The notes under the pieces are model-generated. The model was given only the letters and a program-made list of their open reading frames with translations, ran no database searches and was not told the origin of the DNA. Below, one piece after another: positions 56,644-63,658 of a DNA stretch of 64,000 bases (the stretch's first letter is position 1; the number at the start of each line of letters is the position of its first letter). The translations under genes and the position numbers were made by a program. This DNA is from Neoconidiobolus thromboides FSU 785 (taxonomy: Eukaryota > Fungi > Entomophthoromycota): NCBI GenBank assembly GCA_025603075.1, contig MU626326.1, positions 1 through 64,000 of the forward strand, read 5' to 3'.

Positions 56644-59600
56644 TTATGAGACTAACTCGTTACCCATAATGTCTTCAAGGATTGACCAATCAAGAGAATC
56701 GGAATGACAAAACCTAGTGGGATGGAAGCATAAAGTACCTCTCAAATCATTAAGTTTATATAATAGTTCATTCTTTGGAGATTTAATCTTTCCATTTTTT
56801 ACCTGAAGATTAAATTCCTCCCATTCTTGAAAAGTATTAAATGAATTAGAAGGTATATGAGGGAAAATTTGCTTAAATATCCCAGTATTAAGTTTGGCTA
56901 CTTTCCTGAAGATACCATGATAGGTAGCATCACATATGGGATCTTGTGATAGTTGTTGGACCCAAGGGTGTTGATCATACACCTTGTTCAAAAGTCCTAA
57001 ATGTTCTCTCCAAAGCTTGACTCGTAAATCATGAGCAAATCTCCTTCCAGTAAACTTTTTGTTGTCCATATTCATAGAAACCCTTTTTGTGTCTAAAACA
57101 ACAGCTCCTAATTCTGAATCTCGATTTCCAAGCATTGATCTATCATTAAGATTGTTTGAAGCAATGATTGCAATCTCATCATCTACTAACATTATTTTAC
57201 TATGTACAAACACCATATCAGTCACACATTTCCATTCAAATTCTTCATCTCCTTGAGTGTTATCATTACTAGACATTTCTTTACCAGAAGGAAGGATACC
57301 ATAGGTTCTTAAAAAGTAAAATCCTACATAATCAAATGCGTCTAAATCGGGGAATTCTAGTTTAAATTGATCAAGCAAAGATAGTCCGCCACGGAAGAGT
57401 GTTTGATATGATAGCTGTAACATATGGTTAGCAGGTTTTCCAGTTTCTTCTGGAATAGGGAACATAATAAACACTCTAAACTTTCTTTTGTTTTTTATGG
57501 CATCTTTGATCCTATCTAAAATAGCTACAATAATTCGATTCTCTACCCCACCACCTGCTGTTGATGATACTATATATTGGTTTTCTATATAGATATAGTG
57601 TTGAGCTTTAGAAATGGCTGCCATATAGGCACCATAGACAGATGCTTCAGTAGTTCTTCCTTGTAATCCAGACCAATCTCCTAATGATCTAATAATCTGA
57701 ACCTCGCATGTAAACCTTCCTCTACCAGCAATACCTGAAGGGGGAAGAGCAGGGGCTTTTGGGAGTCCGATCTTAGGTAAATGCTCAAAAGTATGACTTT
57801 TTCTATGATGATTCCATCTTTCTATAAAATTAACTGCAACATCATAAGCAGCTAAGCCCTCAATAGCTACTGAGACATCATGCCATGGCATTCTACATCT
57901 AGAAAACCTATGTACTATATCCTTTGTTGGTTCACTGTAACTTTCTGGTCTAGAATCCTGTGGTTGGTAGTAATCTAGTCCAAGCCAAACATAATTGGGC
58001 TCAAATTTTGAATTGTTTTTCTTAAGCTCTAAATAAGTTAAAGTTTCTGCCATCCCTCTTAAATTTTCTAGCTTTTGGTTTACTTTATATTTAATTTTCG
58101 GCTTCGATTCTGTATTCTCATTTGAATCATCAAGATCTAAAGCTGCTGTTGGAAGTAAAAAGGACCCCGGACTTGTCATATTTGAGTTAGGTGAAAAATT
58201 GGGAGATCCATTCAACGGTGATATATTTCCAAGTCCAGGTCCAGTAAATCTATAAGAAGGAGAAGTAGGTGGAGGAGTCTTCGGCTTTAAAGAAGGTGGT
58301 ACACCTAGATCTGTTAATTCATGATTAAAAGTGTCATACCTACCAACTGCATAATCTAAGCCCCCTACAATTGCTTTAGTAAAATCAATGCATGTAAATT
58401 TTTGGTGATGAGACCATAAAAAGTTTGGTAAACTAAAAGCTGGGTCCCTCATAATATGTATGTTTGGATGGTCTGCTTCGAGGATTTCTTTAGCTTCTTC
58501 CGAACATAAACTTAAAAAAAGAGAATTATTCCATATAATAACATATATTTGTATTCCCTCGTCTGCTTTTTTCCATAATAGGTTACATAGTCTATCTTCA
58601 TCTTTGAGTGGCAATGAGTCTCTCTTTAAATGGATAAAAGGGCTAAGCCACCAACAGCTCATAAATATAGAATCTGTAGCATCGTTTATTAAAGAAAAAC
58701 TTTTATCAAAAAAGTCTTTGCCATCAACTAATGCCTCACAAGCGATATGTGATCTAACCTCAGCAAATGATTCAAAAGGATGTTGGTATCTAAGCAGTTG
58801 TTTCCTGTGGGAGCTTGACATTGATTCAACGCTGCCACTACTTTTACGACCACAAGGAGTGGGATCTTCCCAACTTAGTATTTGATCGCCGCATTTAGCA
58901 CAAGTATAATGCAAAAGCTCTGATATTACCACCATGTTACTTTCAAATGCCCCGAAATCTGTGTGACATGTAGCACATAAAAAAGTTGACGACTTACAAT
59001 AACTACAACGATAGGTATCATGCAATACATACCCTCTATGCATTAAATAATGAGACGAGTAATGAAAACAAGATGAACAATATCCCATTTTACACGGCCT
59101 TTCTTCTCCCCATTCACTAATGGTACCATCGCAACGTGCACTAAAAAATATAAGTTTTTATTTGAAAAATTACTAAATAGTTACCATAATTCCTCATCAT
59201 AATCTTGATGACCCCTTGACATAGCTCCACAAGATGTACGACATTTTAGAGTAACTTGAGTACATTCAGTACATTTATACCTTGATCTTCTTAATAAATT
59301 ACGCTGTACTCTACCATGCACGGTCTGTTTAAAACACCATGAACAGTAAGCAAAAGCAACAAATTTTTTATCACTTAATAGATTGGTCATTCCTATTTTT
59401 ATTGCTTCTTTTTCGATACTTTCAACTTCTCTTAAGATTTCATTCTGGTAATCTCCTGACCCAGTAATTGGGCCAATTTTTGTGCCATCATCTAAAGATA
59501 ACTGTCGAGCCATTCTTTCTCTAAGGCCTCCATCTCCATCTACTAAACTATTTGGGTTAGGTATAGGACTTACTATACTATTTATATCTTCTCCAATAGT

Positions 59601-60221
59601 CGCCCCACACGTAGAAGTTGGAGAAGAGGCTCTGGGCAATTCTTTTATTAAACTCAAGAAGTTTGAACTATTAGACTCTTCGTATTCCAATTTTGAATCA
59701 CTGCTTAAGAGCTCTTTGATGGTTTGTGGGCTAGGGCTATATACTTGTATTTCCGCTTTTTGCTCTATATCTTCATCACAATCTTCATATCTTAATGGAT
59801 CCAGTCGCGCTGCTCTTAATTGTGATCTTTCTGCAACTAGGGCCGATTTTAATGTCTGTAAATTAAGCCTTAATTCCTTCTTCTTAGCTTTTCCCAGTCC
59901 ACTTAATCTTGATTGAACATTTTCTATCATCGTTGTTAATAATTCTTCTGAGGCTAATATTTCAGGCGATAATGAGGATATTTTATCACTGTCATTATTT
60001 TCAATTACTTCCCCACTTTCGCTTAGCTGCTCTATTAAATCTTGAATATATTCATGCTTCTTTAAACATGCATTTTCACTATTTGTATCCGCTGTTTCGC
60101 CTTCAATGACTATATCCGGTGTAATAATGGTTGATTGGTTACTATCGTTGTCTGGTTTTATCATATCATCATAAAGTACCCTAGATAAAGAAGGACTATT
60201 AACTTCATTTGCGGTTGACAT
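56644..60221 (-). CDS. Phospholipase D (two HKD motifs) with an N-terminal tandem Cys8 module, ~1177 aa; single intron 59141-59184
   Basis: HQKFTCID and HSKIMLVD, RMPWHDV, IYIENQY, RSMLGNRDSE; the 44-nt GT-AG intron joins the two ORF-track ORFs in frame (TG|T = Cys). Confidence 0.9.
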
Positions 60222-60615
60222 TTTAACAAATTTAATTAAAAAGGGCTCAGAATTCTCTTATATAAGTGTTTTATTGTAATTTCTTTTTATGCTAAATTTT
60301 CAAGTGTTTTAGTTAAATTAAGGTTATTTTTTCATTTAATGGCTCAAATGAAACTTTATCATCTACAAATGTCCCACATGGATAATTTTTGGTGTCAACT
60401 GCTATAACCGAAACGATACCTACCATGTGTTAGTCAATATTTAAAAGTTTGACATTAAAATTTACCTTTGTGATGTATTTTTCTCACGCGTAAATTTAGA
60501 TATTAATATTTTGTTAAACTTATTAGCATCATAAATATTTTGCAGAATTAAGTTGACATCATTATTGGAAAATGAGCTTCACAAAGTATTTGTTTTGAGG
60601 TTCTATTTTTTTAAA

Positions 60616-61599
60616 ATGCTACCAACTAAATTTATAAATTTGCTATTTTCTTCACTATTAGTATCAATTTATTTAGCAAGCAGAGGTGATAACCAGCCAA
60701 AGTTTATCAATTGTCTAACCAAATGTAAAGTAGATGAATGCGATTCAAACGGAAATAGCAAAACCCCCCTTCCGTTACAGCTTCAGTTAACATTTTGGAA
60801 TTGCGAAGATGAATGTAAATACCAGTGCATGCAAAAAAGTTACAGTATAATGCTACAAAATGATCAAGTTGAACAATTTTATGGCAAATGGCCGTTTTAT
60901 AGAGTGTTTGGTATTCAAGAGATAGCTAGTTTCGTTTTTTCCATTTTAAATGGTTATCAGCATTTCAAAGGTTTAATGAGATTAAAAAATGAAATCAGTT
61001 TTTTTTCCCCATATAAAATCATATATATGATATACGCATGTATATCCCTGAATACTTGGGTTTGGTCAACTATATTTCATGCTAGAGATAAAATATTTAC
61101 TGAAAAAATGGATTATTTTTCTGCTTATTTGTCAATCATCTATACTCTTTACATGACTTCAATGAGAGTCTTTAGGGTCAATTATGTATCCCATCCGAAA
61201 TATTTTATTACTTGGAGTCTAGTTTGTTTAGTTATTTATGCAAGACATGTAGCTTATTTAAGTGGTAAATTTGATTATGATTATAATATGTTAGCAAATA
61301 TAGTTACCGGAGGTATTAATAACCTTTTATGGTTTTTTTGGTCTACCTTTAATCAGCTTTTTCATCAGCCTAAGCACCCTAACCGTTGGGCTCCTTCTAT
61401 TGTTTGTTTCCTTATTTCTTTAGCTATGAGCATGGAATTGTTTGACTTCCCAGCTGTATTTGGTTTATTTGATGCCCATTCTATTTGGCATTTCTCTACT
61501 ATTTTCCTTATACCACGTTGGTATGACTTTTTTGTTAATGATATCAAGTATCTACACCTTAACTTGTTAGATAACAGAATATCTGCCAAAGAAATTTAA
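60616..61599 (+). CDS. PER1: Per1/PGAP3 GPI lipid-remodelling protein; probable ATG at 60616
   Basis: WNCEDECKYQCM, QFYGKWPFYRVFGIQE, HARD..FTEKMDYF, ELFDFP....FDAHSIWH. Confidence 0.95.
   Translation: MLPTKFINLLFSSLLVSIYLASRGDNQPKFINCLTKCKVDECDSNGNSKTPLPLQLQLTFWNCEDECKYQCMQKSYSIMLQNDQVEQFYGKWPFYRVFGIQEIASFVFSILNGYQHFKGLMRLKNEISFFSPYKIIYMIYACISLNTWVWSTIFHARDKIFTEKMDYFSAYLSIIYTLYMTSMRVFRVNYVSHPKYFITWSLVCLVIYARHVAYLSGKFDYDYNMLANIVTGGINNLLWFFWSTFNQLFHQPKHPNRWAPSIVCFLISLAMSMELFDFPAVFGLFDAHSIWHFSTIFLIPRWYDFFVNDIKYLHLNLLDNRISAKEI

Positions 61600-62603: not shown

Positions 62604-63658
<1,055 letters not shown>

Follow-up and report, generated by a model that had tools for sequence, protein, structure and literature searches.

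A phospholipase D gene of Neoconidiobolus thromboides with a tandem Cys8 module, a candidate zinc-binding region, in place of PX-PH

The N-terminal targeting region is the usual basis for classifying eukaryotic HKD phospholipases D (PLDs); it is PX-PH in animals and fungi and C2 in plants. We asked where in this scheme a PLD of the fungus Neoconidiobolus thromboides FSU 785 belongs. Its gene lies on the minus strand of contig MU626326.1 (assembly GCA_025603075.1), of which the first 64,000 nucleotides were analyzed (the window; coordinates on this contig are window positions). A sequence-only reading of the window had described the catalytic core as preceded by two homologous units of eight cysteines each (Cys8 units), with no PX or PH domain apparent. 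Is this one gene, are the Cys8 units a known zinc finger, and what could the pair do for a PLD? Our answer is that the locus represents a distinct, unnamed PLD subfamily in which a tandem Cys8 module, probably zinc-binding, stands in place of PX-PH, a reading to which we give a probability of about 0.7.

One gene with a PLD1/2-type catalytic core

The list of open reading frames (ORFs) holds one of 346 amino acids at 60221..59181 and one of 814 amino acids at 59088..56644, both on the minus strand, which the sequence-only reading had joined across a 44-nt intron. Reading the splice sites and comparing orthologs bore out this join. The resulting two-exon PLD gene (56644..60221, minus strand) would encode about 1,177 amino acids; the orthologs P0002, P0003 and P0004 have 1181-1213. 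Exon 1 (59185..60221) consists of 345 codons and the bases TG, and encodes an acidic, coiled N-terminal region and most of unit 1. The intron (59141..59184) lies inside unit 1, is of the GT-AG type, begins GTAAC and finishes TTTTTTAG, and an in-frame TAA stands right behind its donor site when the minus strand is read. Exon 2 (56644..59140) opens with a single T that completes a Cys codon, followed by 831 codons and the stop codon at 56644; its translation, which matches PLDc and PLDc_2, holds the rest of unit 1, unit 2 and the catalytic core. The splice junction reads EEL-C-ARCDG and is uninterrupted in four orthologs, namely Entomophthora muscae P0001, Massospora cicadina P0003 and the Logan contigs P0002 and P0004, the P0002 contig being 3,608 nt long and nearly all ORF. 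In the searches described below the two exons were used separately, and a contiguous unit 1 was taken from P0002 where needed.

Pfam analysis of the two exons gave only PLDc and PLDc_2 above the cut-offs. Both HxKxxxxD motifs are intact in one chain: HKD motif 1 reads HQKFTCID (58384..58407, minus strand; PLDc match) and HKD motif 2 reads HSKIMLVD (57181..57204, minus strand; PLDc match, 33.2 bits), with an ASNNLNDRS motif behind it (57136-57162, minus strand). Exon 2 matched the catalytic domain of human PLD1 (6ohr) at E 1.9e-87 and that of PLD2 (6ohm) at E 1.1e-79, and this homology covers two stretches and reaches residue 816 of 831. By homology, then, the gene product is a eukaryotic HKD phospholipase D of the PLD1/2 type, for which phosphatidylcholine hydrolysis and transphosphatidylation would be the predicted activities. 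Unit 2 ends about 25 residues ahead of the first catalytic homology. No PX, PH, FYVE or RING domain was found by Pfam in either exon even at E<=1, in agreement with what had been said of PX and PH; at that threshold exon 1 gave weak, sub-threshold matches to MPH2 and Myo1_CA.

Could the two ORFs nevertheless belong to two genes, one for a small Cys-rich protein and one for a PLD starting at an internal Met, as publicly annotated? The deposited N. thromboides FSU 785 protein, P0005 (610 amino acids), matches part of exon 2 with 100% identity and begins at the internal Met of MSSSHRK (58821), hence without the module, and this is why the Cys8 module is absent from public annotation. The Conidiobolus coronatus model P0192 is likewise short. 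However, unit 1 itself is split by the intron, the whole of unit 2 precedes the annotated start within the PLD ORF, and the orthologs are continuous over the junction. So is an intronless genomic ORF: P0191, from a metagenome contig resembling C. coronatus, is an uninterrupted reading frame of 1,040 amino acids comprising two units and a PLD. P0191 is 88-95% identical to P0192, which begins at a Met within unit 2 and is, on this comparison, a truncated model; both public models are therefore truncations. The P0005 model also splices out, as an in-frame 'intron', the Pro/Ser-rich loop behind HKD motif 1 (57958..58302, minus strand), which had been noticed before and is indeed present in the sequence; the orthologs conserve the C-terminal portion of this stretch at the protein level. 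Because the intron cuts unit 1 itself and unit 2 shares an ORF with the catalytic core, we consider the two-gene reading excluded for practical purposes.

The Cys8 unit, its relatives and its predicted fold

Unit 1 (59110..59345, minus strand) extends from a CSWC knuckle to a conserved Trp and is interrupted by the intron, so that its fourth Cys pair is encoded in exon 2; a profile search of the organism's own genome matched its exon-1 part at E 1.4e-18. Unit 2 (58870..59079, minus strand; E 1.2e-13 in the same search) is a divergent copy with a CSSC knuckle and a longer third loop. The search found the unit in this PLD gene only, and the two DUF726 genes of N. thromboides had no detectable Cys8 unit. 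When the two units of ortholog P0002 were compared by BLASTP, they aligned at E 7e-8 and 28% identity with all four Cys pairs matched, and on this alignment they are homologous, as had been proposed. Unit 1 has all family features (eight ligands, family spacing, the CSWC knuckle, Arg30, Thr42 and the terminal Trp). In unit 2 the eight Cys and the Trp are retained, CSSC stands for CSWC and the MAR motif is missing. The unit 2 of Entomophthorales and Conidiobolus, besides losing this motif, has gained an insertion (alignment A5).

A unit measures about 65-75 residues. In an alignment of 259 units, seven of the ligand columns are Cys in nearly 100% of the rows, and the eighth column has 81% Cys and 18% His; such a Cys-to-His exchange is typical of zinc ligands. 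From the invariant ligands and the exchange in the last column we infer that each unit would hold two Zn. Co-loss of Cys pairs, which might have paired the ligands, was sought in the 259 units, and the ligands were too invariant to tell. Other conserved positions are Ser12 (96%) and Trp13 (87%), both inside the first knuckle, His20 (82%), Arg30 (82%), Thr42 (81%) and Arg53 (73%), as well as Tyr33, the M-A-R motif and the terminal Trp. The conserved His stands five residues after the first CxxC, and not two, as had been sketched. The mean charge of the units is +2.7, with 78% of them positive, and aromatic residues are conserved at positions 10, 13, 33 and 73. In ichthyosporean PLDs (P0195:245-327 and P0021:106-188) the last ligand pair of unit 2 is C..H and not C..C.

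We asked whether the unit belongs to a catalogued family. Ten instances of the module, searched against Pfam at E<=10, matched no family consistently and FYVE not at all; no zinc-finger family was found by Pfam among 88 full-length carriers, and NCBIfam gave no match to the unit. Sequence matches in the PDB to C2H2 fingers (BCL11A, E 1.4e-3; ZBTB17) and to L33 were weak and were judged compositional, because only the Cys/His knuckles align. Structure prediction, which the sequence-only reading had suggested, was carried out by AlphaFold2 on a single unit with 143 diverse units in the alignment, and gave a confident model (predicted local distance difference test, pLDDT, 88.4; predicted template modeling score, pTM, 0.77) that is all-beta, with six strands and no helix. 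For the tandem module, with an alignment of six close sequences, pLDDT was 41.7. Against the PDB, Foldseek found nothing for the unit model at E<=1e-3, and an exhaustive VIA-align search gave a best Z of 3.9, which is under the tool's stated noise level; neither tool matched a solved structure covering the whole unit. In the ESM Atlas the model matched a DUF726 cluster at a template modeling (TM) score of 0.80 and Myxococcota hypothetical proteins at 0.68-0.69, whereas an Atlas feature search with the module gave a top score of 0.76 and no lead. No description of the module was found in literature searches on PLD in Entomophthoromycotina, on PLD together with zinc fingers and Ichthyosporea, or on DUF726 and zinc. 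Judged by these comparisons, the Cys8 unit is a domain family uncatalogued in Pfam and NCBIfam that no solved fold matches.

The one resemblance that recurred in the fold searches is to classical zinc ribbons, in which two beta-hairpin CxxC knuckles share one Zn. Model residues 1-45, with strands 1-4 and Cys pairs 1 and 2, superpose weakly on the ribbons of TFS4, Rpa12 and eL42/eL43, with a root-mean-square deviation of 1.8-3.5 A (1.8-2.1 A over 37-38 residues) and Z of 2.4-3.0, at noise level. This likeness suggests that one site, ribbon-like, may be built by pairs 1 and 2 and another by pairs 3 and 4, so that ligation in the model would probably be sequential (1+2, 3+4) and not cross-braced. 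Compared with the ribbon of the TFIIS/TFS C-terminal domain, Rpa12 or eL42/eL43, the Cys8 unit shows a noise-level likeness in its N-terminal half, and has a second predicted metal site and two more strands.

A divergent cross-braced finger of the FYVE, RING or PHD type is one known candidate. FYVE, a domain with eight Cys that binds phosphatidylinositol 3-phosphate and two zinc ions, shares with the Cys8 unit a length of about 65-70 residues, four Cys pairs in roughly similar spacing and two presumed Zn; both are basic and are found in proteins associated with membranes, FYVE domains bring lipid-related proteins to membranes, and the roles of the two may be analogous. Yet FYVE, RING and PHD all lacked a Pfam match at E<=10, the FYVE signatures WxxD, R(R/K)HHCR and RVC are not in the unit consensus, and the predicted fold, being all-beta, lacks the C-terminal helix, its ligation probably sequential. 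The ligands follow a C8 or C7H pattern with His solely in the last position, as against the C3HC4 and C4HC3 of RING and PHD. No FYVE or RING structure appeared among the fold matches, and the sole PHD row, TAF3 (Foldseek rank 14, E 5.4, TM 0.24), is noise. The profile searches thus agree with the earlier view that the module is not a variant of FYVE, RING or PX, and we regard a cross-braced finger as highly improbable.

How widely does the unit occur, and with what partners? A profile built from PLD modules alone (A1) was run on 1.84 billion representatives of clusters at 50% identity. It retrieved 251 protein clusters at E<=1e-3, 89 of them at E<=1e-10, and reached carriers other than PLDs at values down to E 1.7e-42. 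Among the matches listed, 152 proteins hold 308 units, one to four per protein, mostly near the N-terminus and always N-terminal to the effector part. Pfam partners were determined for the 88 full-length carriers: DUF726 was the commonest named one (17/88), which upholds a link that the sequence-only reading had suggested, followed by PLDc (6/88), by cNMP_binding, GRAM, LRR and DUF900 (2 each) and by TerD and Lipase_3 (1 each).

Clustering of the non-module parts of the carriers gave four architecture groups. In the largest (49 proteins) mostly three units, in a few cases two or four, precede a C-terminal domain of about 300 amino acids (alignment A4, for example P0009:241-533); this domain had no Pfam or PDB match and gave a lead at feature level only, to bacterial hypothetical proteins. 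Another 20 proteins have one unit and DUF726. The PLD-type group of 11 has mostly two units, with one representative that has a single unit and the truncated P0005 that has none, and a group of two proteins joins two units to GRAM and two cNMP domains. Copy number goes with architecture: one unit with DUF726, two with PLD or with GRAM and cNMP, three with the ~300-aa domain. The idea of a mobile module shared by lipid enzymes stood in part, since DUF726 and PLD are partners, but the largest group carries a domain of no known function.

Named eukaryotic carriers include Creolimax and Sphaeroforma (Ichthyosporea), a cercozoan metagenome-assembled genome (MAG), Nonionella, Artemidia, Mantamonas, Diphylleia and Rhodelphis. 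Carriers also come from Myxococcota and other bacteria. These bacterial carriers are real, and the unit is sparse in bacteria, being present in 3 of the 151 Myxococcota genomes sampled. A bacterial protein with TerD, a unit and DUF726 (L011:4513-6153) adjoins genes for ParA, GidB and a bacterial sugar transferase. The three-unit protein P0157 occurs in compact, operon-like contexts on marine contigs and also in Polyangiaceae and Myxococcales MAGs. Members of the three-unit group come from Myxococcota MAGs, marine metagenomes and the protists Mantamonas and Diphylleia, and the bacterial three-unit genes at L008:6001-7239 and L014:3001-4236 stand in operon-like rows of unannotated genes.

Finally, to place the module-bearing PLDs, we inferred a maximum-likelihood phylogeny from 53 catalytic regions (LG+G4, 572 columns) with plant C2-PLDs as the outgroup. 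All 13 module-bearing PLDs fell into one clade of 16 rows with an ultrafast bootstrap value of 100 and a Shimodaira-Hasegawa-like approximate likelihood ratio test (SH-aLRT) value of 99. The rows of this clade without a module (P0192, P0199 and P0205) begin at or just before the catalytic region and represent truncated models or fragments. Animal, fungal and stramenopile PLDs of the PX-PH type branch elsewhere, and several lineages outside the clade gave weak PH or PX-PH signals just ahead of the core. As the module-bearing PLDs form one supported clade, the fusion is old and defines a PLD subfamily. The architecture occurs in entomophthoralean fungi, ichthyosporeans, cercozoans and foraminifera; this patchy spread may reflect loss or transfer, and the tree is compatible with both.

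Possible roles of the module

We propose that the tandem Cys8 pair is the N-terminal regulatory region of this PLD subfamily, and that each domain would present eight metal-ligand positions in four pairs, presumably to two Zn. Replacing PX-PH, the module would bring the PLD to the membrane or otherwise regulate it, and the most likely mode would be interfacial binding through conserved basic and aromatic residues, including the Trp in the first zinc knuckle. Some role in targeting or regulation is quite likely. That the module binds membrane or lipid directly is close to, but somewhat below, an even chance; this mode is favored because the family spans bacteria and distant eukaryotes, because its partners act at membranes and because basic and aromatic residues are conserved. 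More tentatively still, the Cys8 unit might be a new class of zinc domain for the membrane interface or lipid headgroups, similar in function to FYVE or C1 but of an unrelated fold, conserved from bacteria to eukaryotes and defining a third PLD architecture that predates the opisthokont-rhizarian split, a wider claim that we think doubtful as a whole.

The proposal can be set against known systems. Mammalian PLD1/PLD2 and yeast Spo14, the PX-PH PLDs, have the same two-HKD core (E 1.9e-87 to PLD1), a loop insertion behind HKD1 and, immediately ahead of the core, a regulatory region, whereas the N. thromboides gene has two Cys8 units there, no PX or PH, and a place in a separate clade (100/99). 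Plant C2-PLDs likewise join a PLD core to another N-terminal membrane-binding module, but C2 is a Ca-dependent beta-sandwich and the plant enzymes are distant relatives. With the DUF726/TMCO4/Mil1 alpha/beta-hydrolases the link is the unit itself, since a subset of DUF726 proteins has one N-terminal Cys8 unit, but the effector domain is other than PLD. The DUF726 proteins, of which yeast Mil1 is one, are predicted lipases of the peripheral-membrane type (PMC4751606). For Mil1 a C-terminal DUF726 domain is described, and the relevant passages of that paper do not mention a Cys8-like unit (PMC4751606).

Several points weigh against a zinc module dedicated to membrane recruitment. In the Entomophthorales PLDs, unit 2 no longer has the MAR motif and its charge is close to neutral, and the ligand pairing of the model is drawn solely from the weak superposition of residues 1-45 on zinc ribbons. 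The C-terminal domain of the largest carrier group has no known function, and some carriers already have GRAM, which makes a module of lipid enzymes a tendency and no rule. Nucleic acids or proteins, moreover, are frequent ligands of basic zinc ribbons. A domain for protein-protein contacts or intramolecular regulation that acts by autoinhibition of the core, oligomerization or docking to a conserved partner would fit several of these facts: small zinc domains often mediate protein contacts, a copy number fixed per architecture at one, two or three suits a structural or regulatory part, the GRAM carriers already possess a membrane-binding part, and the second unit of this PLD is not basic. But the family occurs both in bacteria (Myxococcota MAGs and the contig with ParA and GidB) and in distant eukaryotes, which makes a eukaryote-specific protein partner such as Arf, Rab or ubiquitin unlikely, and the effector domains differ, so that a common intramolecular docking surface is not obvious. 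We consider such a contact domain possible, though on balance improbable.

Nucleic-acid-binding zinc ribbons, which would give the protein a second, non-lipid role, are suggested by the likeness of the N-terminal half to ribosomal eL42/eL43 and to the Rpa12/TFS ribbons of RNA polymerase, and by the net positive charge of the units. These ribbon matches are under noise level, with Z below 3, however, and the carriers have no nucleic-acid enzyme or DNA-binding partner domain; the partners are lipid hydrolases or membrane-associated domains. This alternative is very unlikely, and a regulatory module that would act at membranes is the reading we prefer.

The module-bearing PLDs show a third, phylogenetically coherent PLD architecture beside PX-PH and C2, one that truncated gene models keep out of sight in public annotation. 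The Cys8 family is sizeable (at least 251 clusters) and recurs ahead of enzymes that act on or at membranes. Naming it would better annotate hundreds of proteins, and would offer a handle on the recruitment of PLD and DUF726 (TMCO4/Mil1) hydrolases in organisms without the classical domains.

Termini of the protein, its paralog and the neighboring genes

Upstream of the module the protein has 292 amino acids that are acidic and partly coiled, as the sequence-only reading had it. In this otherwise poorly conserved region, residues ~105-140 of exon 1 (59900-60000) are near-identical in all entomophthoralean orthologs; the stretch is coiled-coil-like and finishes in SALVAERSQL. The C-terminus, GNELVS, had been called atypical; because the orthologs end in GNEIVS, it is instead typical of the subfamily.

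The only other PLDc gene of the N. thromboides genome lies on contig 54 at ~68.8-71.6 kb of that contig, where two adjacent minus-strand ORFs score for PX (7e-7), PH and, twice, PLDc, so that the organism also has a canonical Spo14/PLD1-like enzyme. Because a canonical PX-PH PLD is kept as well, the two paralogs probably respond to different cues.

In the window, a Per1-family gene (60553-61596, plus strand; E 3.9e-90) is divergent from the PLD gene, and beyond it lies a cytidylyltransferase-like exon (62604-62858, plus strand), so that three phospholipid-related genes, PLD, Per1-family and cytidylyltransferase-like, stand side by side.

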